Source of the DNA: Octopus sinensis
Taxonomy: Eukaryota
Reading direction: 5' to 3'
Assembly: GCF_006345805.1 (NCBI RefSeq)
Contig: NC_042998.1
Location: forward strand, 33,356,001-33,420,000
Length of the DNA: 64,000 nt
Part shown: positions 7,815 to 64,000 of the stretch, piece by piece
Numbering within the stretch: the stretch's first letter is position 1
How the letters are laid out: every line of letters begins with the position of its first letter
The notes under the pieces: model-generated
What the model saw: only the letters and a program-made list of their open reading frames with translations
The model's database searches: none
What the model was told of the DNA's origin: nothing
Program-made: the position numbers and the translations under genes

Positions 7815-8200
7815 GCACAAGGCCTCAAATTTGAGGGAAGGGATTAAGTCGATTACATTGACCCCAGTACGTAACTGATACTAATTTTATTGATCCCAAA
7901 AGGATAAAAGGCAAAGTTGACCTCAGTGGAATTTGAACTCGGAACGTAATGGCAGATGAAATACCTATTTCTTTACTACCCACAAGGGGCTAAACACAGA
8001 GAGGACAAACAAGGACAGACAAATGGATTAAGTCGATTAGATCGACTCCAGTGCATAACTGGTACTTAATTTATCGACCCCGAAAGGACGGAAGGCAAAG
8101 TTGACCTCAGTGGAATTTGAACTCAGAATGTAGCAGCTGACAAAATACCACTGAGCATTTCGCCTGATGTGCTTATAATTCTGCCAGCTCGTCACCTTAC
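7815..8200 (-). mobile_element. SINE family B dimer
   Basis: Two units joined at GAAATACCTATTTC (7958-7971). Confidence 0.8.
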
Positions 8201-22090: not shown

Positions 22091-23247
22091 CTTTAAAATT
22101 CGAAACTTTTAAATTGTCATATTTATAATTATATATATTTATATTTTTAATACAACAATTATTTTACACAAGTATATATCTTTCTGATGAATTTTCTAAT
22201 ATTGATTTCCTGATATTAATAATAATATTTTATATAAAATATATATAATTGCTCATATTAAATACATAAATACTTTAATAGAATAGAGCACGCAATATAA
22301 ATTCAGTATATAATATTCTCATTGAATATATTTAACTAAAGATTCATATATCATCATCATCATCATCATCATCATTTAGCATCTGTTTTCCATGCTGGCA
22401 TGGATTGGACGGTTCAACTGAGGTCTGGGAAGCCAAGGGGCTGTACTAGGCTCCAGTCTGATCTGGCAGTTTTTCTACTGCTGGATGCCCTTCCTAACAC
22501 CAACCACTCTGAGAGTGTAGTGGGTGCTTTTTATGTGCCACCGGCACAGGGGCCAGAGGAGTGACCATGATCAGTTGGTGCTTTTCACATGCCACTGGCA
22601 CAGAAGCCAATGAAGGCTGCACTGGCATCAGCCACGTTCAGATGGTGCTTTTTATGTGCCACTGGCACAGGGATCACAACTAGAATTTCCATTTGATTTA
22701 TATATATATATAATTTTATATACATAATTATATACATATATAAGTTTTTAACTTTACAGCTTGTCTGTTCACAATTTAATATTTTTAAATTACAGATTGC
22801 TCAAGGATGTCCCCTGGGTGGTGACCACAGTGGACTGTAGGTTGGCCCGCAACAGATCCTTCCTGGGGATGATGGCACACTGGCTAAACCCCAACACCCA
22901 CATGAGACAACATGCTGTCCTGGCCAGCTCTTGGCTCAGAGGACATCACACCTTTGATATTCTTGTGCAGGCCATGGTGGACACCCATTACAAGTTCCAT
23001 CCAAATGACAAAGTGATCAGGACCATGATGGACAACAGCAAAAAGTTTGTTATGGCATTTATGTAGTTTGGCACAGAAGTTGAACTCTTGTCACACACTC
23101 TTGAGGCTGCTTCTGATCCAGATGTGGAGGGTGCTGAGGATGTGGATGAAGTTGAGTACATTTCTGTTGATACCATCCTTGACGAGTCCAGCAACCTGGG
23201 CCTCATCCTGCCAGGGCACATGAAGTGCGCAGCCCGTACCTATTTCT

Positions 23248-45174: not shown

Positions 45175-46440
45175 CTGGAACTTTTGGAGCCCTCACAGCC
45201 TTATTCGACCCTCACAATTTGGATTTATCTTTAACTCCAGCTGCTGTAGCCAACTCATCGAGTTTCTTGAGGACATCACCCGAGTTACTGATGGCAGCTC
45301 ATGGCTAGTTGTTATCTACTTTGACTTTGCTAAAGCCCTCAATTCTGTGCCACACAAACGACTCATGGCAAAACTCTCTGCAATGGGTGTGAAAGATGAT
45401 CTCTATAACTAGCTGAAGTCCTTCATTCTCGGTCGGAAAGAGGTAGCTACGGTTCTAGGACATCATTCTTCACCCTACGAGATGACGTCTAGTGTACCAC
45501 AAGGATCCGTTCTTGGACCCCTATTGTTTGTTGCATATATTAATGACATAGATGCCAACTTGAGGAATGTTACAGTGTTGAAATATGCACAAGACATCAA
45601 GCTGTATCTCGAATTAAAACGAACAGATCCTATGCGCTATAAATATTTTTCTGCAATTAGACCTGGACACAAATGGAGCAATGGATCTCTGACTGGCAGC
45701 TCTAACTGGCTGTGGACAAGTGCGACATCATGCATTTTGGAAAGAAAAACCCAGCCTTTACATGCTCCCTCGGCAACACCAATCTCAAGAAGTCTTCTAG
45801 TGAACTTGATCTGGGTATTATTGTAAACAGCGATCTGCGCTGGACAAACCACATCTCTAAGATTGTCAAGAAGGCTGAGGCTGTCCTAGCATCACTCAGT
45901 AAGACCTTTGTCAGCTGCTCTCTGGCTATCTGTTTAAAACTGTATATCACTATGGTACGTCCACACTTGGAATTTGCATCACCAATATGGAACCCTTATC
46001 TTGCTCAGCATATACATCTGGAAACTGTTCAGAAACGTGCAACAAAACGTATACCCGCCGTCAGGTATCTACTATACTCTGAACGTCTTGCTTCCCTGGG
46101 CATGGACACATTGAAGCTCAGACGTCTGGTAACTGACTTGGTTGACATCCACAAGATTACCACCATCTTTCCAGCAACTTTGGGCATCCTTTTGAATTCC
46201 ATATGTCAAACACTCGTGGACATGTTCAGAAAATCCAAAGACAACACAGCACCCATGACTTTCGGAACATTTTTATATGCTCAGATTTGTTGAAGCATGG
46301 AATAAACTGCTCGCATCAGTCGTTAGCTGTCGGGACACTACATCCTTCATAACTTCCATGCTTCTTGAAATCCGCGAACAATACACCTGATGGCCCTTTC
46401 TTTTTTTGTTGTAGTGCACGTGAGGGCTGTATACAACAAT
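45175..46440 (+). mobile_element. Degenerate CR1-clade LINE RT fragment
   Basis: SQFGF, IYFDFAKALNSVPHKRL, SSVPQGSVLGPLLFVAYINDI, MVRPHLEFASPIWNPY; stops and frameshifts. Confidence 0.88.
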
Positions 46441-48387: not shown

Positions 48388-51300
48388 CGAAATTTTGGAA
48401 TTAGTACTGGCTCTGCAACGCATTGTGGGTTATTGTCTTGTTGCCGGAGAAAAGATCTGATGACCATATTTTCGTAGTGGGACAGTCTCTGATGTCTTGA
48501 AGAGTGGTGTCGAGAGCTTCGAGGGATCGCTTGTGGGCCATTGTGCATTCATCCCAAACTATCAGCTGGCAACTCCGGAGAAGCAAGCCCTTTCCAGACG
48601 TTTTGGTGATGTTACAGGAAGGCACTTCGGACCTTGCCAAATCAAATGTTAGCTTAAAGGTTGAATGCGCTGTCCTGCCATTGGGCAGTAAAGTTGCTGC
48701 AATGCCAGAGGAGACCACAGCTACGGCTACGTCTTTTCGGTGCCTTACTTTAGCAAGGAGAAGCTGAATAACCAACGTTTTTCCAGTCCCTCCAAGTGCA
48801 TAAAAAAAATGCCTCCTTTTCGTTTCTGCATGTGGTTGAAGATGGTACTGTAAACCCACTGTTGCTCAGGCAGAAGTTTGGGCTCATTTTGCTGGATGTA
48901 TTGATTAAGGGCTTCAGTGTCATAGGACGTTTCACGTATTAACTCTGTTGGTATTGAAGGCGTCCCTTGGCGCAATGGTTGCGGCAGCCCGTATGTAGGT
49001 AAGGTATTACCTCCCAGAGAAACAGTCTTGTTCTCTATGTCAAGTAAAGCACAGTTGTAAATTTAATCATTTTCAGCAGGAAAGCAGGTATGATGCAGTT
49101 GGGCCTGGTAATGGAAGTCTTCTGATAGGTCGTGTCTGTACTTTAACCACAATGAATCGGGATTGGGAAGTTGGCAAATGTGCAGGAGTACAGAAAACAG
49201 AGCTCTGAGACTTTTCGGTGACTGTGAAACAGCAGCCTCCGCAAGTGTAGCATCCCACTGCGCACCGTCTTCTAGCAGCCCACGTATTAATCAGGCCTCC
49301 CTGAATGTAGCACATGTATGGCCGATCACGGTCTTTAATTAGTCGAAGCAATTGGAGGTAGATGCATTCTTGTTGGCCCGGGTGAACCGTGTACACTCTA
49401 CCGAGGCAATTATCAAATTTAATCTCAGGGTGACCATCAACGGTTCTGCCTGACTTCCTTCGCTGCCACTTACACTTATTCCGTGTGTAGTATGATGGGA
49501 CTTGAGGATAAAGCAGATCTTGCGCAAACAGATTTACCTGGCAGAGTTCGAAGAAAGCCGTGAGTGTTGTATCTTTTTTTTCTTTTTCTTTTCTACTCTA
49601 GGCACAAGGCCCGAAATTTTTTGGAGGAGATCAGTCGATTAGATCGACCCCAGTACGCAACTGGTACTTAATTTATCGACCCCGAAGAGATGAAAGGTAA
49701 AGTCGACCTCGGCGGAATTTGAACTCAGAACGTAAAGACAGACGAAATACTGCTAAGCATTTCGCCCGGCGTGCTACCGTTTCTGCCAGCTCGCCTTTGG
49801 TTGCTTAATCAGTCAAGTAGCAGTGGAAGCGGTGAAGTACACACGCTGGCCGTTTTCAAGTGCACTGCAAGCTACTGGATTGGCGGATGCCTTTGTGTAG
49901 TGGAAACCCGAAAATGTGCCAAAGGGCTTCATTATTACTTATGTACCTGCTTACTTGGTATTGCGTTATTTCATCTCGGACTCCGTCAGGTTGCAGGCCG
50001 AACACAGCAGCATCAGCGCCTCTGTTGATGTACTTGCACACATATTTGATAGACTTTACAGAATTGCAGTGCTCGACATTTATGTGAGCATCGAATGCCT
50101 TCGACAGGATTGGGCAGTAAGGCACTCTCTATCTGTTGTCTACTTCATACGGAAAATCATGCGCACCTCCATCATTGCAAATCTTCTGCCCCTGGTCAGG
50201 TATATTATGTCCTGCCAGATAGGCCTAAGGCATTTTTCGACCGCTTCTTTTTATGCCAAGTCGATTTTCTTGGGTTTTTTTTATTACAAACGTCTTGAAT
50301 ACTATTGTTTCTCTCGATGTTGAATTCGAAACCTCGCTAGGAGGGGTCAGTTATTCTCATGCCCCCCCCCTTCTGAAGTAACTCCTTATATTTTTTAAGT
50401 TTTTTCTGATCAAATTTTAGTTCTTGGTTATTCCGGCTGTCGCAGCAAAATTTATTGTTTTTCTCTATTTCCAATTTCCATCTCTTTGGTTGGATCCATT
50501 TCTTTTAACTTTTTGTCTAGCTTGTTGCAGAATTGTGACAGTTCTTCCTCAGAAGAATCTATGTCTGAATAATTTATCATTTATCCCAAAAAAAGTATAA
50601 TACCCAACAAGAAAGCTTCCCAACTCAAGCAAGTAGTGGGGAGAACGTTAACAAATCCACCACAAGGCAGGAAACAAAGTTTCTTGTGCAACAAAAAGAG
50701 TTTAACAACAATAATTGTGTAATATATCTGAAATAACTTGAATCTTATCCTTTCAGACTGTAATAATAACGATATGTGTTTCTTTATTACCCACAGGGGG
50801 CTAAACATAGAAGGGACAATCAAGGACAGACAAATGGATTAAGTCGATTACATCGACCCCAGTGCGTAACTGGTACTTAATTTATCGACCCCGAAAGGAT
50901 GAAAAGCAAAGTCGACCTCGGCGGAATTTAAACTCAGAACGTAAAGACAGACGAAATACTGCTAAGCATTTCGCCCGGCGTGCTAACGTTTCTGCCAGCT
51001 CGCCTTTGGTTGCTTAATCAGTCAAGTAGCAGTGGAAGCGGTGAAGTACACACGCTGGCCGTTTCAAGGTGCACTGCAAGCTACTGGATTGGCGGATGCC
51101 TTTGCGTAGTGGAAACCCGAAAATGTGCCAAAGGGCTTCATTATTACTTATGTACCTGCTTACTTGGTATTGCGTTATTTCATCTCGGACTCCGTCAGGT
51201 TGCAGGCCGAACACAGCAGCATCAGCGCCTCTGTTGATGTACTTGCACACATATTTGATAGACTTTACAGAATTGCAGTGCTCGACATTTATGTGAGCAT

Positions 51301-51440
51301 CGAATGCCTTCGACAGGATTGGGCAGTAAGGTACTATCTATCTGTTGTCTACTTCATACGGAAAATCATGCGCACCTCCACCATTGCAAATCTTCTGCCC
51401 CTGGTCAGGTATATTATGTCCTGCCAGATAGGCCTAAGGC
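48388..51440 (-). mobile_element. Helitron RepHel relic (helicase 48388-49000; Rep pieces 49795-50225 and duplicated at 51003-51440)
   Basis: GGTGKT, SSGIAATLLPNGRTAHSTFKL, LIVWDECTMAHK (PIF1); [48 protein letters not shown] (Rep). Confidence 0.9.
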
Positions 51441-52299
51441 ATTTTTCGACCGCTTCTTTTTATGCCAAGTCGATTTTCTTGTTTTTTTTTTTTTATTACA
51501 AACGTCTTGAATACTATTGTTTCTCTCGGTGTTGAATTCGAAACCTCGCTAGGAGGGGTCAGTTATTCTCATGCCCCCCCTTCTGAAGTAACTCCTTATA
51601 TTTTTTAAGTTTTTTCTGATCAAATTTTAGTTCTTGGTTATTCCGGCTGTCGCAGCAAAATTTATTGTTTTTCTCTATTTCCAATTTCCATCTCTTTGGT
51701 TGGATCCATTTCTTTTAACTTTTTGTCTAGTTTGTTGCAGAATTGTGACAGTTCTTCCTCATAAGAATCTATGTCTGAATAATTTATCATTTATCAAAAA
51801 AAATTATAATACCCAACAAGAAAGCTTCCCAATTCAAGCAAGTTGTGGGGAGAACGTTAACAAATCCACCACAACGCAGGAAGCAAAGTTTCAACAAAAA
51901 GAACTTAACAATAGTAATTGTGTAATATATCTGAAATAACTTGAATCATATCCTTTCAGACCGTAATAATAACGATATGTGTTTCTTTATTACCCACAGG
52001 GGGCTAAACATAGAAGGGACAATCAAGGACAGACAAATGGATTAAGTCGATTACATCGACCCCAGTGCGTAACTGGTACTTAATTTATCGACCCCGAAAG
52101 GATGAAAGGCAAAGTCGACCTCGACGGAATTTGAACCCAGAAGAACGTAACGGCAGACGAAATACGGCTACGCATTTCGCCCGGCGTGCTAACTTTTCTA
52201 CCAGCGCGCCGCCTTCTGTAATAATAACGATATGATGATGGTTTCAGAGGCTGACGATTGCACGTAAACTCTGTGAAAATAGTTCGCTCATATGAGGGG

Positions 52300-52830
52300 T
52301 TCTCATCCATTTTTTTTATCTATGGATCCCTTTGATGACTATTTTATTCTTGTGGACCCCTCCCCATAACTGTTCGATGTTTAAAACCTAGTTTTATAGA
52401 AACTTCTTTCAAAATTCCTATTTTGTTTTGCCCACATTAACTTGTGTAGGTTGAACTACGTAAAATGTTAGAGAAAGAAATCTAGCTGTTTCTTGCAATA
52501 CGTACCAATATGTACATCTAAAACAGGGGTTCCCAACCATTTCTTACCTACAGGCCCCTTTGATTACCATTTTATTCTGATGGACCCCACCATAGCCGTT
52601 CGATGTTTAAAAACTGGTTTTATAGATACTTCTTTCCAAATTCCTATTTTGTATTGTCCACATTAACTTGTGTAGGTTGAACTATGCAAAATGTTAGAGA
52701 AAGAAATCTAGCTGTTTTTTTAAATACATACCAATACATACATCTAAAGCAAAAATTTTTCAGGGACCCTTAAAATACTATTGCTGACCCCTAACTTACT
52801 ATTTGGTTACGTGGGCCCCACGAACCCTGG
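52300..52830. mobile_element. Tandemly duplicated hAT-type MITE
   Basis: CAGGGGTTCCCAACC terminus; two approximately 220-bp near-copies; related pieces at 41120-41310 and 43480-43620. Confidence 0.55.
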
Positions 52831-52831
52831 C

Positions 52832-54411
52832 TTGGTCATCATGCGGGACGAAGTCGAAAGCGTTAGTCAAGGCCCCGATGTCAACAAGGGTCACGGCCCT
52901 GACGGCATGCACCCACGGGTTATCAAAGCGTTGACTCCGGTTGGCGAGCCCTTAACCCGTCTATTCAATATGTCATTGGTGACGGGTGTTATACCTGCGG
53001 ACTGGAGAACAGCGATAATCCGCCCAATTTTCAAGAAAGGGATCCGCGAAAACCCTCTTAACTACCGACCGGTTTCCCTTACATCAATAATCAGCAAGAT
53101 GTTCGAAACCATCCTTAAGAAAGGTATGATGCTCCACCTCCAAAACACAGCCTCTATCTCTGATTCCCAACACGGCTTCGAGCCGAAGAGATCATGCTTG
53201 ACCAACTTACTGGTGATGAAAGAATTGGTGACGCGCATCCTCGATGATAGTGATGCTGTTGACATCGTTTTATTGGACTTTGCCAAAGCTTTTGACTCGG
53301 TAAACCACCGCCTATTACTTGTCAAGCTTCAAGCAAACAGTTTCCATCCGGATATTGTACGATGGATTGGTGCCTTCCTCTCAGATCGCTCCTTCCAAGT
53401 CCAAGTTAATGGTTCGCGATCCGACGTCTCCAGTGCGAGCAGTGGCGTGCCTCAAGGTTCAGTGCTTGGGGCCTTATTGTTCTTAGTCTTCATAAATGAC
53501 TTGCCCGACGACCTCACGCAACACACCCTTCTATTTGCCGACGATGTCAAACTGGTCGCTCCTCGCGGTGATATAGAGGATCTTCGTCGATGCCTCCACC
53601 AAATTTGGAGATGGTCTAACGAATGGGACCTGTGTCTGAACGTGTCAAAGTTCTGTCATCTGCCTGTTGGCTCTCCTCCTGCAACTCAACTTGATTTTGA
53701 GCCGGGTCGTCTGCTGCTGGAGAGGACCGATCAGGTAAAGGACCTGGGTATCTTGGCGGATTACTCCTTTTCGCCTTCGGCCCAGTGCGTCCATGCTTCC
53801 AACAAAGCACGCGGAGTTCTGTTCTTGATTCGACGGTCATTCGGAATGCTCACAGCAGCCATATTCCTACCGCTCTATGTCACGCTGGTGAGACCCATAT
53901 TGGAGTACGGGATTCAAGCCTCTTCGCCTTATCTCCTCAAAGACATACAGCATCTCGAAAGAGTCCAGAAGCTGGCTACCCGCATGGTTCTTGGTCTCAT
54001 GAATTTGTCTTATGAAGAAAGGCTGAAGACGCTCGACCTTTATTCTCTAGAAAAACGACGACGCCGTGGTGATCTCATTCTTGCTCACAACATCATAAGC
54101 GGAAAGTGTAACCTCTCGAAAGAGCTGTTCTTCACTCCTGCTCCAGAGCGTCGGCTGCGGGGTCATTCCGAAAAGCTCTATCTGCGACGATTTCATCTCA
54201 ATCGAAGGGGAGGGGCTTTTTCCGTCCGGGTTGCGGATCCGTGGAATAAGCTGCCGGACGAGATGGTGAAGATGCCAACGACCGCTCGGTTCAAAGTCTC
54301 CCTTGACCACAAGTGGCCTGAACTCTTTACATGAACACCACCCTGTACATAACTCCATGTCCCCCTACATGGCCCTGCTTTTTGCTTTTTGAGCCAAAAA
54401 ACTAACTAACT

Positions 54412-56029: not shown

Positions 56030-56198
56030 TTCCATCCATCCATCCATCCATCCATCCATCCATCTATACATACATACATACATACATACATACATACATA
56101 CATGCATGCATGCATGCATGCATACATACATACATACATACATACATACATACATACATACATACATGCATACATGCATGCATGCATGCATGCATGCA

Positions 56199-56232
<34 letters not shown>

Positions 56233-56262
56233 CATGCATACATGCATACATGCATACACACA
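56030..56262. repeat. Compound (ATCC)n/(ATAC)n/(ATGC)n microsatellite
   Basis: Directly visible; representative of many TA, CA, ATAC, AAT and GAT tracts in the window. Confidence 0.95.
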
Positions 56263-56581
56263 TCTAGAGCAAAGTATAACTGGACTTGTGTTCTTGAGGA
56301 ACACGATATCTGGGACTAATAAATCTGCAAGATTTTCTTAAGATTTAATGGATAATGCTTCCAAGTTGGTGGCTAGTTAAAATTTACTCTAAACGAAAAA
56401 GAGAAAGAAAACATACATACATACATATGTACGTACGTATGTGTGTATTTATGTATGTATGTAAGCATGTATGTATGCATGTATGTATACGCTTACATAT
56501 ATAGTAATGATAATTTTATAATTGCAAATACGTAATCGGTCTCTCTGTTCATTTGAAAAGGATGTTTCAAACTTATGTCCA

Positions 56582-56938
56582 TTACAAACTCTTCAGGACT
56601 TTGATCAGGTAGTATGTAGAATAGTGTTCCTGCAAGATGTTCTCGTATTCAGCGATGAAAGCAAAGTCTCTTTTATAACGTTTAAACGTGCTTCCCACTT
56701 CACGTAGGTTTTCTGGCATAAAAGAACGGTCGATTGTATCGAAGATCGCAAGATTAAAAATCCACATCATTTGATAAAGTTCGCATTGCATAGAAAGGTT
56801 ATCATACGTAAGATCGTCTAAGGTGTTTTTCATTTCTTCCTCGTTTTCATCATTATGTACTTGTTCCAGAACCACTGCTACTTTGGACAGGTCATTATAA
56901 TGGTCAAAGTATAGTTGTGTACTGATATTTTGTAAATA
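56582..56938 (-). CDS. Terminal coding exon of the putative cytokine-like gene
   Basis: ttcttttttcag| acceptor; 119 codons YLQNISTQLYFDHYNDLSKVAVVLEQVHNDENEEEMKNTLDDLTYDNLSMQCELYQMMWIFNLAIFDTIDRSFMPENLREVGSTFKRYKRDFAFIAEYENILQEHYSTYYLIKVLKSL*; non-repetitive, amphipathic-helix-like. Confidence 0.82.
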   Translation of the reverse strand, partial: YLQNISTQLYFDHYNDLSKVAVVLEQVHNDENEEEMKNTLDDLTYDNLSMQCELYQMMWIFNLAIFDTIDRSFMPENLREVGSTFKRYKRDFAFIAEYENILQEHYSTYYLIKVLKSL

Positions 56939-56954
56939 CTGAAAAAAGAATATA

Positions 56955-57320
56955 TATATATATAAACGACTTAATTTATATATAATTTCTTATTATAATA
57001 ATATAATATAATAATATAATAATTATTAATATATAATTCATATATAAACGACTTAATGTATATATAATTTATTATTATAATAATATAATATAATAATATA
57101 ATAATTATTAATATATAATTTATATATAAACGACTTAATTTATATATAATTTCTTACTATAATAATATAATATAATAATGTAATAATATAATAATTATTA
57201 GTATATAATTCATATATAAACGACTTAATTTATATATTATTTATTATTATAATAATATAATATAATAATATAATAATAATTAATATATAATTTATATATA
57301 AACGACTTAATTTATAAACA
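56955..57320. repeat. AT-rich minisatellite, about 80-90 bp unit
   Basis: TATATAAACGACTTAAT recurs five times (about 56960, 57043, 57125, 57215, 57296). Confidence 0.85.
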
Positions 57321-57889
57321 CCTTAAGAAATTATATTATTAGAACATTTAGAAAGGCGACGAGCTGGCAGAATCGTTAGCACACTCGACGAAATGCTTAG
57401 CGGTAATTCGCCCGTCACTACGTTCTGAGTTCAAATTCCGTTGCGGTTGACATTGCCTTTCATCCTTTCGAGATCGATAAATTAAGTACCAGTTGATCAC
57501 CGGAGTTGATGTAATCGACTAGTCCCCTCTCCACAAATTTCAGGCCTTGTAGAAAGGATTATTAGAACGTTTAGAGAATGGCCGTCGTGGGGTAAAAATT
57601 TATCATCGAACGATTGCAGTCGATGGCCAGGTTTCAGTTTCAATTTCAAGCCAATTTATTTCAATAAATCCACTAAATTCCTATGTTACTGAATATTGGT
57701 TTCAGTTTTAGGCATAAGGCTAGCAATTTCGGAGTGGGGTGCAAGTCGATTACATCGACCACAGTGCACAACTGGTACTTGTTATATTAACCTTGAAAGG
57801 GATGAAAAGCATGGTGATTTCGGCGGAATTTGAACTCCACTAAGCATTTTTCCCAACGTGTAAACGATTCTAGCAACTTGTTGCCCTGT

Positions 57890-58200
57890 GTCACTAAATA
57901 CTAAGAGCCCACCTACATACCTCATGTAAACTATAGAGTGTACATGCCTGTTTAATATAAAGCAATCAATCATTAGTCTGGTATCTTTTGCTGAAGATGA
58001 GAAAACCACTTCGAAATACATGTAACCAACAGTCTAGTTAGGGAGCGCTGTGAGCTGAATCGATGCATTTGTACCCCTTTTTCAAGTGCGAGAAATTTTC
58101 TCCATGACAAAATACAGTGAATTGCCTTCATACGAGTTTGAATATTTGAACTGGGAGCAAGTTTGGATTTACACACATCGCTGCTTTGCGGTGCCACCCT
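57890..58200 (-). mobile_element. Possible degenerate Penelope-like RT fragment
   Basis: LEKGVQM/GTNAS..TVGYMYFE and IVYMRYVGGLLVF resemble the G..MG..A and RYVDD motifs; heavily decayed. Confidence 0.4.
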
Positions 58201-58326
58201 AAACTCTATCTATGTTTACTGGTAGGCATGTATGCATGTATGGAGGCAGTGTGAGAGAAATGGTGAGCGTGACAGTTGAGAATTAAATCTACGTGTGTGT
58301 TATATATGGAAACAGTAAAAACTTAC

Positions 58327-58421
58327 CCCTGGATGCCGTCTTTCTTCGAAAATTCTGAACTATTTAGAACGGTTAAGTTGCGAAAAATTTTTAGTAATTC
58401 GGTTTCATTAAATCTTTTTGC
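58327..58421 (-). CDS. Middle coding exon of the putative cytokine-like gene
   Basis: ttttcttattag| acceptor, |gtaagt donor; open in phase 0 after the previous exon: AKRFNETELLKIFRNLTVLNSSEFSKKDGIQ(G); 95 nt, so it ends in phase 2. Confidence 0.65.
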
Positions 58422-58519
58422 CTAATAAGAAAAAAATATAGTTTTGAAAAATTAATTTTCAATGCAAAGAATTAATAAAATATTAACGATAATTGATAAG
58501 AATTAACAAAAAATACTTT

Positions 58520-58902
58520 TCTACTCTAGATACAAGGCCCGAAATTTTGGGGGAGGGGGCCAGTCGATTAGATCGACCTTAGTACACAACTGGTACTTAA
58601 TTTACCGACCCCGAAAGGATGAAAGGCAAAGTCGACCTCGCCGGAATTTGAACTCAGAACGTAAAGACAGGCGAAATACCTATTTCTTTACTATCCACAA
58701 GGGGCTGAACATAGAGGGAACAAACAAGGACAGACAGATGGATTAAGTCGATTACATCGACCCCAGTACTTATTTAATCGACCCCGAAAGGATGAAAGGA
58801 AAAGTCAACCTCGGCGGAATTTGAACTCAGAACGTAACGGCAGACAAAATACGGCTACGCATTTCGCCCGGCGTGCTAACGTTTCTGCCAGCTCACCGCC
58901 TT
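58520..58902 (-). mobile_element. SINE family B multimer, intronic in the cytokine-like gene
   Basis: Junction at 58673-58686; further family B copies at about 48187-48380, 49585-49793, 50775-51003, 51985-52213, 57353-57560, 57695-57885 and 60265-60490. Confidence 0.8.
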
Positions 58903-59366
58903 GAATTGGTAAAATATTAATCGTGAGTGTGTGGTTAAGAAACTATATGACATGAGATTTAGTTCTATCGCGCGGCACCTTCAACAAGCCTCTTCTACTA
59001 AAACCCCGAGACGGCCAAAGTTTTGAGGGTGCCTTTGGTTGATGGAAACTGTATTTGGTTAACATCATGCATATATGCGACCCCCCCCCATACACACACA
59101 CAAGCGTACATACACACAAGCATAAGACCAATACTTGGACAGACTCAGAGCAGCCCTTGGGGAGCGAGCGACGCCACTTAGAAAGTCGCGAACAGCGATG
59201 AAAAGACTTTGACCAACAAAAAATCGATTAATTGTTTAAACAGCATATTAAATGAACAAACGATTAATTATTTGGTTAGATAAAGAAGTGATATTAAATC
59301 AGTGCGTGTGTCATTATTATTGGCGTAATGACGCTCCCAAGACATAAAAAAAAAAGATGTAGTTAC

Positions 59367-59605
59367 CATAGTTTCACGTATATTCCTGACAAGTACCAAA
59401 GTTTCTTCAGTTTTTTCAAGTAATCTGTTGAAATATTTCGTTGAATTATCTCCTTTGATGAAATGTTGTCCATCTTCGTAAGTAAATTCTGAAGAAGGCG
59501 TGCATGGATGATGCCACGGAATCAGTGGTGCTTTAGTGACTGGTAATGCGATCGTGCATTGAACAGCGAACAAAACTGCTGCGACAGTACAATACTTCAG
59601 GATAT
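59367..59605 (-). CDS. Coding exon (signal peptide and N-terminus) of a putative secreted helical cytokine-like protein
   Basis: tctcttatttgtag| acceptor, ATG|gtaact donor; 239 nt, phase 1 to 0; ILKYCTVAAVLFAVQCTIA-LPVTKAPLIPWHHPCTPSSEFTYEDGQHFIKGDNSTKYFNRLLEKTEETLVLVRNIRETM; hydrophobic signal-like stretch. Confidence 0.8.
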
Positions 59606-59910
59606 CTACAAATAAGAGAGAAATTAAAAATTTTTTAAAAAATGGATTTAACAACAAATTTCAATGACGATTATTATCAATGTCTAATATAATTTTTTTC
59701 TTTCTTTCTTCAAATTTTCTTCTGTTTCTCGCCGAGTGTTTTCCGTAAACCAAGGGCAGAGAAATTCAATGGATGCATTCCCAGATTACATATGCAAATC
59801 CACAGGTAAAATATGTATTTAAAAATTGATAAATAAATAAATTCATGAATGGATGTTGTTTTCACAGCGATAATGCTCTTCTCAGTACATGAGCTGTTCC
59901 AGTTAATACG

Positions 59911-59956
<46 letters not shown>

Positions 59957-60960
59957 TATTATTATTATTATTATTATTGAGTGAGAGAACAGCGCATGCC
60001 ATCAAAGTGACATTGGGGTACAGATATACGAAGTCCAATATACCCATCATGACTACCCGTCTGATAAGGGTACATCAGACACATGCATCACAACCATATG
60101 TGCACGACATACAGGTCGTCCTCGCCACATAACCCACCTTTCAACAAATTTACTGGGGGCGTAGCAGAAATTCCTTCTCCACTCTCCTTTCAATAATTAT
60201 ACTAATAATGATGGACTCTCCCGTCGACGACGACATATGAATATTCAGCGTTTTTTGTTTTTGCTTTTTGCCCACAAGGGGCTAAATACACAGGGGACAA
60301 ACAAGGACAGACAAACGGATTAAGTCGATTACATCGACCCCAGTGCGTAACTGGTACTTAATTTATCGACCCCGAAAGGATGAAAAGCAAAGTCGACGTC
60401 GGTGGAATTTGAACTCAGAATTCAGCGGCGGACGAAATACCACAAAGCATTTCGCCCGGCGTGCTAACGATTCTGCCAGTTCGCCGCCCTAATAAATGCG
60501 CCCTTTTTAGAGCCTAGCCAGGCTCATGGGCCCGGTGTATGTGTTCCCCAGCTGGATGGGACGCCAGTCCATCGCAGCGTTATTCATTTTTGCCAGCTGA
60601 GTGGACTGGAGCAACGTGAAATGAAGTGTTTTGCACAAGAACACAACGCGTCGCCTGGTCCAGGAATCGAAACCACAATCTTACGATCATAGTGCTGACA
60701 CCCTAACCACTAAGCCACGCGCCTCCATATTGAGTATTCAGCGTTTGCTGAACGGCCAGCACAGATGATGATTTGTTCATAATGCTCAAATGTGGGTGCT
60801 GTGCATTTACTCGTTCTCGCCATCAAATCGACGTTGTCTGAACAGGTGCGCGTTGTAAGGGAGATAACTCTGAATACTTTTAGATTCTTTCATTGCAAGT
60901 TCTTAATGTTTGTATGTACGTACATGTACACGTTCTGGCATACATACATACATACATACA

Positions 60961-60994
<34 letters not shown>

Positions 60995-61019
60995 CATACA
61001 TACATACATAACCTCGATC

Positions 61020-62034: not shown

Positions 62035-63683
62035 TAGATATGTAACCATATGCATGAGAATACATACATAAAACAAAACAAACAAATCTGCACATATGCA
62101 TACATACATACATACTACATACATACATACAAACAAACAAACCAAAAATACCATGTTGTTGATGTTGAATTTCCAATGAAGGAGCTTTAGATCTAGGAGA
62201 GAAACTGGCTCTATCTCTACTAGCAAGAAATCTTGAAATAAAACTAAATAATTACATACATACGTACATTCATACATACATACATACATACATACATACA
62301 TACATACATACATACATACATGCATACATATATACATACATACATAAATGCATGCAGGCATACGTACATATATACATACAATATCTAAAAAAAATTATGC
62401 TTCTATGAATACCATTACAAAGCATTGTTCTTAATAATCCATCAGTTACACTACAAAATCAGTTACACTCCATTGTTTTCATCACTACTTTCTACATTTC
62501 TACATTCAATAGACTCGATCTCCAACTAAATAAAGGAACAAAACTTAGACAAACAAACAAGTTAAAAATTCAATGTTTAACACTTGGCATATTACTATGG
62601 TTATCAATATGGATACAAGCCAAAAAGCTGAATCCAATCCAATAAGCAGTGTGCATTCCTTCCAAGCTTTTTCAGCAGGTTTGTAAAACCGAGTCTTTGT
62701 TTCTGTGAAGGTTACCAATATGAGAGGTGTTCACTGCCACAAACAATCAATTCCTAAATAGTAGTTTCATATCAATCATATTAGTCATATATTCCTTTAG
62801 CCCTTTCTTACTGGTATCCCAATATTTTTCCAATAGATGAAAACGTTTTTTTTCTTCTTTCTTTTACTAGAATCATTGGTTGTATATTCTAAGGGAAAGT
62901 AAAACTGAGATTTTCCGATGCTCATACGTTTTCCAGTTGCATCAACAGTATAGGAGAAAAAAGGGACCCGACGGATGTCCTCCTTTATCCGTTTCCTGTA
63001 AAGTTTGTGGCTCTTAAATAAATGCAGTGCTTTATGTTATCAGATGGAAAGGTGTAAATTAATTGGGATGCTAAATTAGGATGTTGCTCCATTCATGCTC
63101 TCCTATATAGCTTTAAAATTGTCATGAGAGTAGCTCCAGCCAGAAGCGAAAACTGGATGACGGTTTCGGACCGCAGTACCCGTCTAATATACTCAGAAAC
63201 TAATTTAAAAAGAAACAATATTTGTAGTCGTTTAAATGCAGTTCAAATCTTACCGAGATTCATTTCGAGATTTATCAGTATGGACTCGATAGAAGAAGCA
63301 ATAATCTTTTCTACCATAAGCACGAGGCCTAAAATTTTGCTCAACTGGTATTTTTTCTATTGACCACGAAAGAATGAAAGGCAAAATTGACCTCAGTGGA
63401 ACGGTTACAACAGCAAATTCAAAATCTGGAACTTAGGTAACTAATTCCTGTGATATTCCTGTTTGAAGGAAAGAAACATTTAAATATTGTGTTGCTATTT
63501 AACGAAATACATTCATTTTTGACTTGTATTGAGTTCGATAAACGAACGGAAGCGCTAATAAGAATTATCCAAAGATTCTGACTGCCTTCCTTATCTCAAT
63601 ATACAATATCAGTACACCGCTTCAAACACTACATACACACACACACACACTCTCTCTCTCACACACACACACTCTCTCTCTTT

Positions 63684-63724
<41 letters not shown>

Positions 63725-63777
63725 CACACACAACACACAACACACACACACCACACACACACACAACACACACATAC

Positions 63778-63812
<35 letters not shown>

Positions 63813-64000
63813 AATACACACAAATACACACACATATATATATATATATATTATTGAGCGAGAGAGCAGTACATGCTATCAAATGACGCTGGGGTACAAT
63901 TATACGAAGCCCAGTATACCCTTCATGACTACCCGTCTGATAAGGGTACACCAGGCACATGCATCGCCACCATATGTGCGCGATATGGTGAACTCATACC

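Follow-up and report, generated by a model that had tools for sequence, protein, structure and literature searches.

A candidate secreted helical cytokine-like gene in Octopus sinensis and its small, mollusc-restricted sequence family

A gene that may encode a secreted long-chain helical cytokine-like ligand has been located in a stretch of 64,000 nucleotides (nt) of the Octopus sinensis genome (NCBI RefSeq assembly GCF_006345805.1, contig NC_042998.1, positions 33,356,001 to 33,420,000). This stretch is hereafter called the window, and its own numbering is used throughout. The gene product belongs to a new sequence family restricted to molluscs, and a cytokine-like function for the family is the reading to which we incline, if only slightly. 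According to a 2026 survey, molluscs have IL6R-like receptors, JAK and STAT, while BLAST searches found no ligand of the IL-6 family, and the question of the ligand was left open (PMC13203501). Homologues of Upd2 have been found only in Drosophila species, those of Domeless being widespread (PMC5385356). The activator of JAK/STAT signalling in lophotrochozoans is thus an open question. In a 2026 preprint lamprey IL-6 was found by combining length, signal peptide, AlphaFold four-helix bundle and Foldseek similarity (PMC13081863). A literature search, not an exhaustive one, retrieved no earlier description of a helical cytokine in molluscs or cephalopods. The family described here provides a concrete and testable ligand candidate, by virtue of its cytokine-like predicted structure and of conserved positions corresponding to gp130 contacts. 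Ordinary annotation passes over genes of this kind, as it does the window copy, and the relatives bear the label 'uncharacterized'.

All the features pointed out in a preliminary description of the window, made from the sequence alone, reside on the minus strand. They fit a predicted gene of four exons encoding a precursor of about 230 amino acids (aa). Three coding exons, at 59605-59367, 58421-58327 and 56921/56938-56582, account for about 223 residues. Depending on the choice of exon 1 and of the last junction, the predicted precursor measures 227-239 aa, in agreement with the length of roughly 230 aa first proposed, and inside the 150-280 aa limits adopted as a criterion in the lamprey study (PMC13081863). 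Coding exon 2 (59367..59605) is defined by its reading frame, its splice sites and tblastn similarity to two relatives, the O. sinensis protein P0001 and the clam protein P0007, both described below. Its acceptor, tttgtag/AT (slashes mark splice or cleavage sites), closes a phase 1 intron, and its donor, ATG/gtaac, opens a phase 0 intron; this order, phase 1 within the signal region and then phase 0, is the one given in the preliminary description. Exon 2 translates as (D)ILKYCTVAAVLFAVQCTIALPVTKAPLIPWHHPC..., i.e. (D)ILKYCTVAAVLFAVQCTIALPVTKAPLIPWHHPCTPSSEF...NIRETM, and includes a signal-like hydrophobic core, a predicted cleavage site (TIA/LP), an N-terminal extension carrying W..PC (C15), and helix A. 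Over its 11 residues (VLFAVQCTIAL) the hydrophobic core averages 2.29 on the Kyte-Doolittle scale, the N-terminus of the precursor being a candidate only. The cleavage motif T-x-A/LP is conserved in the Octopus paralogue.

Exon 3 (58327..58421, 95 nt; translation AKRFNETELLKIFRNLTVLNSSEFSKKDGIQG) and the third intron go beyond the gene structure first outlined. Judged from its homology to the Octopus paralogue and to the clam gene, exon 3 is genuine. In a phmmer alignment query residues 79-215 match residues 88-225 of P0001, and the start of the alignment coincides exactly with the start of the exon; in turn, the RFNE motif encoded by exon 3 recurs in the clam protein. The exon is preceded by a phase 0 acceptor (ttattag/GCA), followed by a phase 2 donor (CAGGG/gtaagt), and contributes the C-terminal end of helix A, the short A' and the long AB loop. 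The last coding exon (56582..56938, stop codon TAA at 56584-56582) codes for helices B, C and D and for the CD loop, and encodes YNDLSKVAVVLEQ, LSKVAVVLEQ, MQCEL, RSFMP (SFMPENLR) and FKRYKRD. The best tblastn matches of all eight homologues fall in this exon (E down to 1.6e-19), which holds the invariant residues C138, R157 and Y195. After the predicted cleavage only two cysteines are left, C15 and C138 (mature numbering), as read at the outset from the PWHHPC and MQCEL motifs. The predicted mature protein (204 aa, 24.3 kDa, isoelectric point (pI) 5.2) has five N-x-S/T sequons, and is probably secreted and N-glycosylated.

Relatives of the protein are few. An exhaustive phmmer search over 1.84 billion representative proteins gave eight matches at E <= 1e-3, the best at 2.8e-19. 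The latter is O. sinensis XP_036356621.1, 'uncharacterized protein LOC118762197' (P0001), which is 37% identical. KAJ8317576.1, 'hypothetical protein KUTeg_005480' of the clam Tegillarca granosa (P0007), aligns over almost its full length with about 25% identity (E 1.1e-4). The remaining six matches are fragments of last-exon open reading frames (ORFs) found in animal ENA and Logan assemblies, two of the six on the same 426-kb contig. A further search, started from P0001, added the orthologues of LOC118762197 from O. vulgaris and O. bimaculoides. Word-index searches were less productive: the spliced window protein gave no matches, the family alignment returned only two members, and P0001 only Octopus orthologues. 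All three window exons align to homologues. Motifs shared within the family are W..PC, RFNE, LSK.AVFLE, MCEL, RS.MP and F.RY.RD, plus a C-terminal tyrosine. The W..PC cysteine is present in all three full-length sequences, the helix C cysteine of MCEL in 11 of 11 members, and the arginine of RS.MP (R157) is invariant. The window protein keeps every one of the family-wide conserved residues (C15, C138, R157, F171, Y195). The notion that W..PC, Y..L...AV.LEQ, CE, MP...R and R..RD identify a poorly characterised invertebrate family is thus well founded. The label 'CNTF-like', proposed for the same family, has to be abandoned, because no member bears a functional name; the only names on record are 'uncharacterized protein', 'Hypothetical predicted protein' and 'hypothetical protein'. 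As far as these searches reach, the family is small, unnamed, fast-evolving and mollusc-restricted, with members in Octopus and in a bivalve. The window gene is a distinct paralogue of LOC118762197 rather than its orthologue; outside the exons, blastn similarity between the window and the LOC118762197 locus (L003) is confined to short interspersed nuclear elements (SINEs), 82-94% identical, which also mark the window as octopod DNA. No further paralogue was found elsewhere in the window.

The exon layout may supply a second link among these genes. Introns of the clam gene are in phase 1 (inside the signal region, G/GT), phase 0 and phase 0, and the third exon measures 99 nt. In LOC118762197 a phase 1 intron precedes exon 2 and a phase 0 intron follows it; exon 3, in phase 0, measures 96 nt, and the last exon begins at ttttacag/AAC. 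The first two introns of the window gene match those of both relatives; the third is in phase 2 as assembled, in phase 0 there. The molluscan genes appear to have in common an intron of phase 1 that interrupts the signal region, then one of phase 0, then a small exon (about 96-99 nt) before a large final one. LOC118762197 and KUTeg_005480 are true sequence relatives of the window gene, sharing with it motifs, two cysteines and, as to the first two introns, exon layout, but exon 3 of the window gene is 1 nt shorter than that of LOC118762197.

The structure of the 204-aa mature protein (from LPVTKAP) was predicted with AlphaFold2 from a nine-sequence alignment, without templates. The model obtained has a mean predicted local distance difference test score (pLDDT) of 77.8 and a predicted template modelling score (pTM) of 0.77; mean pLDDT in the five models ranges from 73.5 to 77.8. 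Helices, in mature numbering, span residues 34-61 (A), 66-75 (A'), 92-116 (B), 120-146 (C) and 170-203 (D), and are connected by AB, BC and CD loops of about 30, 3 and 23 residues, respectively. pLDDT is 81-95 in helices A-D, and falls below 50 in residues 1-31 and 80-89. An up-up-down-down bundle requires a long, a short and a long loop. This is the order found in the model, and the opposite of that of ferritin and Dps, in which the long crossover is BC. The predicted fold is accordingly a long-chain up-up-down-down four-helix bundle. Foldseek comparison of the model to 350,542 PDB chains points the same way. All of the first 25 matches are long-chain class I cytokines (G-CSF, IL-6, OSM, IL-27p28, CLCF1 and CNTF), among which OSM 8v2b; IL-11, additional CNTF and IL-27 chains, and then prolactin and growth hormone (GH), rank lower. 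Alignments are near full length, with target-normalised template modelling (TM) scores of up to 0.78 (0.70-0.78 for the best members), root mean square deviation (rmsd) of 3.3-4.5 A and probability 1.00. G-CSF 5zo6 scores E 0.015, TM 0.75 and rmsd 3.3 A over 167 columns; TM is 0.78 for IL-6 1alu, 0.77 for IL-11 4mhl, 0.72 for CNTF 8d74 and 0.70 for CLCF1 8d7h. The four-helix bundle put forward in the preliminary description is therefore what AlphaFold2 and Foldseek agree upon, at the level of prediction. A search of the model against viral structures gave nothing useful.

Likeness to known cytokines can be followed down to single positions. G-CSF and IL-6 (PF00489; 5zo6, 1cd9, 1alu) are the top neighbours of the model (TM 0.73-0.78, rmsd 3.3-4.0 A, about 165 columns), and have in common with the window gene a similar size, the long/short/long loops and an intron in the signal region, as the signal-peptide coding region of IL-6 genes carries one (PMC13081863). 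In contrast, neither has detectable sequence similarity to the window protein, and coding exons are four here, five in IL-6. IL-6 and G-CSF each carry two local disulfides, in and around the AB loop; this configuration is not found in the mollusc family, which has one conserved cysteine pair, split between the N-terminal extension and helix C. The latter arrangement recalls LIF and OSM (PF01291), in which disulfides tether the N-terminal extension to helix C and are thought to strengthen binding at site 2 and to free these cytokines from the need for an alpha receptor (PMC10022904). In the window protein C15 precedes helix A, in a region (residues 1-21) of low pLDDT, and C138 is placed two-thirds down helix C. 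LIF similarly has a cysteine before helix A (R-H-P-C, to be compared to W-H-H-P-C here), and C138 is the likely partner of C15; an aromatic residue at the N-terminus of helix D is a further common trait. LIF and OSM genes likewise open with a short exon and close with a large one. Differences concern the number of disulfides, two or three in LIF/OSM, one predicted here, and the rank of LIF, which stands below G-CSF and IL-6 in the Foldseek results for the octopus model. The long-chain fold of the model is shared by CNTF, CLCF1 and IL-11 (PF01110, PF07400) as well; CNTF is not known to have a signal peptide or disulfides.

In gp130 cytokines the site 3 anchor sits where helix D begins: it is the F of an FXXK motif in CNTF, CLCF1, LIF and OSM, and a W in IL-6, IL-11 and p28 (PMC10022904). 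In predicted helix D the second residue is F171, at a position that holds F or Y in 10 of the 11 members of the family, and in the model it thus occupies the place of the gp130-type aromatic anchor. Topology puts the C-terminus of helix A, RFNE, the BC turn, RS.MP and the start of helix D together at one end of the bundle, and because of this the conserved surface motifs would cluster at the site 3 tip. Upd proteins of Drosophila are approximately twice as long, and basic; by description only, the window protein differs in being acidic (pI 5.2). Upd1-3 resemble it, by description as well, in being secreted and glycosylated invertebrate proteins, predicted to be helical, which engage a gp130-like receptor and whose sequence goes unrecognised beyond their lineage (PMC5385356); the family described here would fill the corresponding role in molluscs.

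A plausible mode of action may be sketched. The signal peptide would be cleaved after T-I-A, and a C15-C138 disulfide would pin the N-terminal extension to helix C, as in LIF/OSM. Helix A and C faces could bind the cytokine-binding module of a class I receptor of the gp130/Domeless-like type, a second contact being made at the site 3 end by RFNE, which opens the AB loop, RS.MP, which closes the CD loop, and F171-x-R-Y-x-R-D, with which helix D begins. Receptor engagement would eventually lead to JAK/STAT activation. That the family members are the endogenous ligands of the molluscan gp130/Domeless-like receptor, and share common ancestry with vertebrate IL-6, LIF and G-CSF, is a more demanding proposal, which we advance tentatively and regard as possible rather than probable. 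If true, long-chain class I cytokines, the LIF-type tether and the aromatic anchor of site 3 would date to the bilaterian ancestor, and JAK/STAT signalling in lophotrochozoans would gain the initial component that it now lacks.

Several results weigh against the cytokine-like reading, some bearing on the protein, others on the integrity of the locus. To begin with the protein, a Pfam scan of the window protein gave no match at E <= 10, and no family member exceeded the gathering score of IL6 PF00489, LIF_OSM PF01291, CNTF PF01110 or IL11 PF07400; a colinear, sub-threshold alignment was observed between the helix B-C region of P0002 and the IL11 profile (E 0.069, 13.2 bits versus a cut-off of 25.8). 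Sequence and profile searches of PDB retrieved no relevant chain. In hhalign comparisons of the family profile to human LIF, IL-6 and CNTF, whose sequences were checked against PDB entries, probabilities were 0.1-0.9% (LIF 0.1%, CNTF 0.14%). Since sequence-level tests all fail, the window protein falls outside every defined cytokine sequence family, and its resemblance to cytokines, as modelled, is structural and positional. The structural evidence has weak sides, too: Foldseek E values never reach 1e-3 (best 0.015) at sequence identities of 10-20%, the alignment used for modelling is shallow, with only three sequences over the N-terminal half, and the helix D motif, F-x-R-Y, differs from FXXK. 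The AlphaFold2 model of the clam homologue is of low confidence (pLDDT 61, pTM 0.54), and in its list of Foldseek matches G-CSF, LIF and IL-6 are mixed with Dps and ferritin, at E >= 0.67. The fold assignment might consequently be an artefact of prediction from few sequences, 9-11 in all, most of which cover the last exon only, and the protein a generic helical bundle or a coiled coil; the stretches with pLDDT below 50 and the modest Foldseek E values would fit. We deem this very unlikely, because pTM is 0.77 and helices A-D are modelled at pLDDT 81-95, the five models agree, and alignments to G-CSF and IL-6 are sequential, nearly full length and score TM 0.75-0.78. Moreover, the clam model, despite its low confidence, repeats the pattern of helices and loops, with a BC loop of 7 residues. 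The long BC crossover needed for a ferritin or Dps topology is found in neither model (BC 3 in octopus, 7 in clam; AB and CD long), and Dps matches come only from the clam model, at E >= 0.78. Granted the fold, the protein could still be a secreted helical product with a different job, such as a hormone- or pheromone-like factor, a carrier or a gland product, resembling cytokines by convergence or remote descent. The lack of sequence similarity to cytokine families is in keeping with this, as is the tiny, mollusc-only family (8 matches among 1.84 billion representatives), and the dibasic KR pairs of FKRYKRD could in principle be prohormone cleavage sites. Yet all of the first 25 PDB neighbours are class I cytokine ligands, and, to our knowledge, hardly any proteins other than ligands of class I/II cytokine receptors combine long-short-long loops with an up-up-down-down topology. 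The KR motif itself is embedded in the most confident part of helix D (pLDDT >90) and conserved as F.RY.RD, and is better explained as a structural or binding element. Overall, a non-cytokine role seems distinctly unlikely.

As to the locus, the main specific doubt concerns the intactness of the window copy, and arises from a frame problem at the exon 3/exon 4 junction and from the missing exon 1. No in-frame ATG occurs within the exon starting at 59605, and the start codon must reside outside the 56582-59605 interval. Moreover, no exact product or orthologue of the window gene was on record in public assemblies and database look-ups, including those made with the last-exon ORF. Two acceptors are available to the last exon. 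The first, ttttttcag/TAT at 56938, is strong and in phase 0; the second, atatcag/T, is a weaker AG at 56922-56921, which places the start of the exon at 56921, 17 nt downstream. Joining exon 3 as assembled (95 nt) to 56938 causes a frameshift, and a stop is met after 20 codons; 56921 is the sole start of the last exon in frame with exon 3 as assembled, and the resulting junction matches the position of the clam junction to within one base. A GGGG run spans the exon 3 donor at 58326..58329, and translations were compared with and without an additional G. Were the run GGGGG, exon 3 would reach 96 nt and be in phase 0, the state of the O. sinensis paralogue, and its junction to 56938 would be in frame (...DGIQG/YLQNISTQLYF). 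The assembled sequence is compatible with an error in the homopolymer, with a true loss of 1 nt for which the AG downstream compensates, and with a pseudogene of recent origin.

The window copy could accordingly be a decaying or non-functional paralogue, in which the loss of 1 nt from exon 3 broke the ancestral phase 0-phase 0 junction. Such a hypothesis accounts for an exon of 95 nt in place of the 96 and 99 nt, both in phase 0, of the O. sinensis paralogue and the clam gene, for the strong phase 0 acceptor that leads to an early stop, and for the lack of an evident start exon and of an annotated orthologue or exact product; surroundings dense in SINEs and in fragments of reverse transcriptase and helicase genes are in tune with it. 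However, all three exons are open and flanked by canonical splice sites, and all residues conserved in the family are intact. An in-frame AG is found 17 nt downstream, at a position within one base of the clam junction, and a single-base assembly error in the GGGG homopolymer explains the discrepancy equally well. We consider decay unlikely, though by no means negligible. Skipping of exon 3, with exon 2 joined straight to 56938, would keep the frame, but was rejected as the main product because the conserved RFNE exon would be lost, and the AB connection would be too short for the predicted topology. The last intron hosts an AT-rich tandem repeat at 56950-57316 (82/172-bp unit, about 4 copies, 90-93% matches; Tandem Repeats Finder), which stops just short, by a few bases, of the polypyrimidine tract of the 56938 acceptor, and might affect the choice of the branch point.

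Since the exon at 59605 has no in-frame ATG, a short upstream exon 1 ending in phase 1 is required. Candidates were sought by scanning for an ATG followed by a phase 1 donor, and two are reported, both on the minus strand. The one with the better donor, at 63254..63263, reads ATGAATCTCG/gtaagatt, and would yield MNL-D-ILKYCTVAAVLFAVQCTIA/LP (MNLDILKYCTVAAVLFAVQCTIA/LP), hence a 227-aa precursor. The other, at 59751..59778, has a weak donor (ATGCATCCATTGAATTTCTCTGCCCTTG/gtttac), reads MHPLNFSAL-D-ILKY..., and has a TTTAAATA element about 45 nt upstream. A search for exon 1 by similarity to the MLWVFRVMKEL exon of the paralogue gave no match. At the other end of the gene a possible polyadenylation signal, ATTAAA, resides at 56344..56349 (minus strand), 232 nt past the stop codon; this is a consensus match only.

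The locus of the paralogue LOC118762197 shows peculiarities of its own. XP_036356621.1 has an extra segment of 25 residues, which was at first read as an exon missed in the window gene, an idea that was dropped. The segment is encoded by a 75-nt exon (DIFCVTKRSEYLFPQFERASSIFRQ) at 14147-14221 of L003 (CM016860.1), to be compared to the window SINE at 58817-58864. The O. vulgaris protein is devoid of the segment, which has the likeness of a translated SINE, and for these reasons the 75-nt exon is probably either an exonised SINE or an annotation artefact. The exon encoding the signal region and helix A of LOC118762197 is found twice in O. sinensis, at 7821-8042 and 10001-10189 of L003, about 2.2 kb apart; the two copies are nearly identical, upstream acceptor regions included. 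Downstream of the gene, at 22994-23027, there is a match to exon 1 as modelled in O. vulgaris. The duplicated exon and the displaced match suggest either a tandem array or a local rearrangement.

Among the fragmentary relatives, P0003 and P0005 are both carried by L001, a contig of a metagenome assembly (ENA ERZ21867824 ctg122701l) made of animal, mollusc-like looking DNA. In the database version of P0003 (L001 10001-10573) three in-frame TGA codons were translated as Trp, and the last 50 residues or so are therefore spurious. An upstream tandem array of about 91 bp in the same contig yields repeated weak 'MCEI' matches.

Repeated DNA abounds in and around the window gene. Copies of an octopus SINE, 82-94% identical to L003 repeats by blastn, are found in intron 2 at 58513..58919. 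Additional copies reside in intron 3, at about 57351-57550 and 57684-57837, and upstream of the gene, at about 60330-60480. The SINE core motif GGCAGAAWCGTTAGCAC occurs at 16 sites in the 64 kb, versus 0 expected, among which 57366-57382, 58873-58889 and 60461-60477. Traces of larger mobile elements were found as well. A 517-aa ORF at 52781-54334 (plus strand) encodes a reverse-transcriptase domain (RVT_1, E 1.8e-29), and represents a transposon remnant. ORFs at 45482-46293 (plus strand) may be related to the RVT_1 ORF, the part at 45712-46293 having no Pfam match. A PIF1-like helicase fragment at 48401-48859 (minus strand; E 5.9e-31) may derive from a Helitron. Two nearly identical ORFs of 135/136 aa, at 49916-50323 and 51125-51535 (plus strand), are located about 1.2 kb apart, and are either a local duplication or copies of a repeat. 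Finally, long microsatellites of the types (CATA)n/(TACA)n and (AC)n border the gene on either side, at 56033-56263, 60939-61010, 62253-62380 and 63626-63834, and generate many spurious 'MYVCMYV' ORFs.

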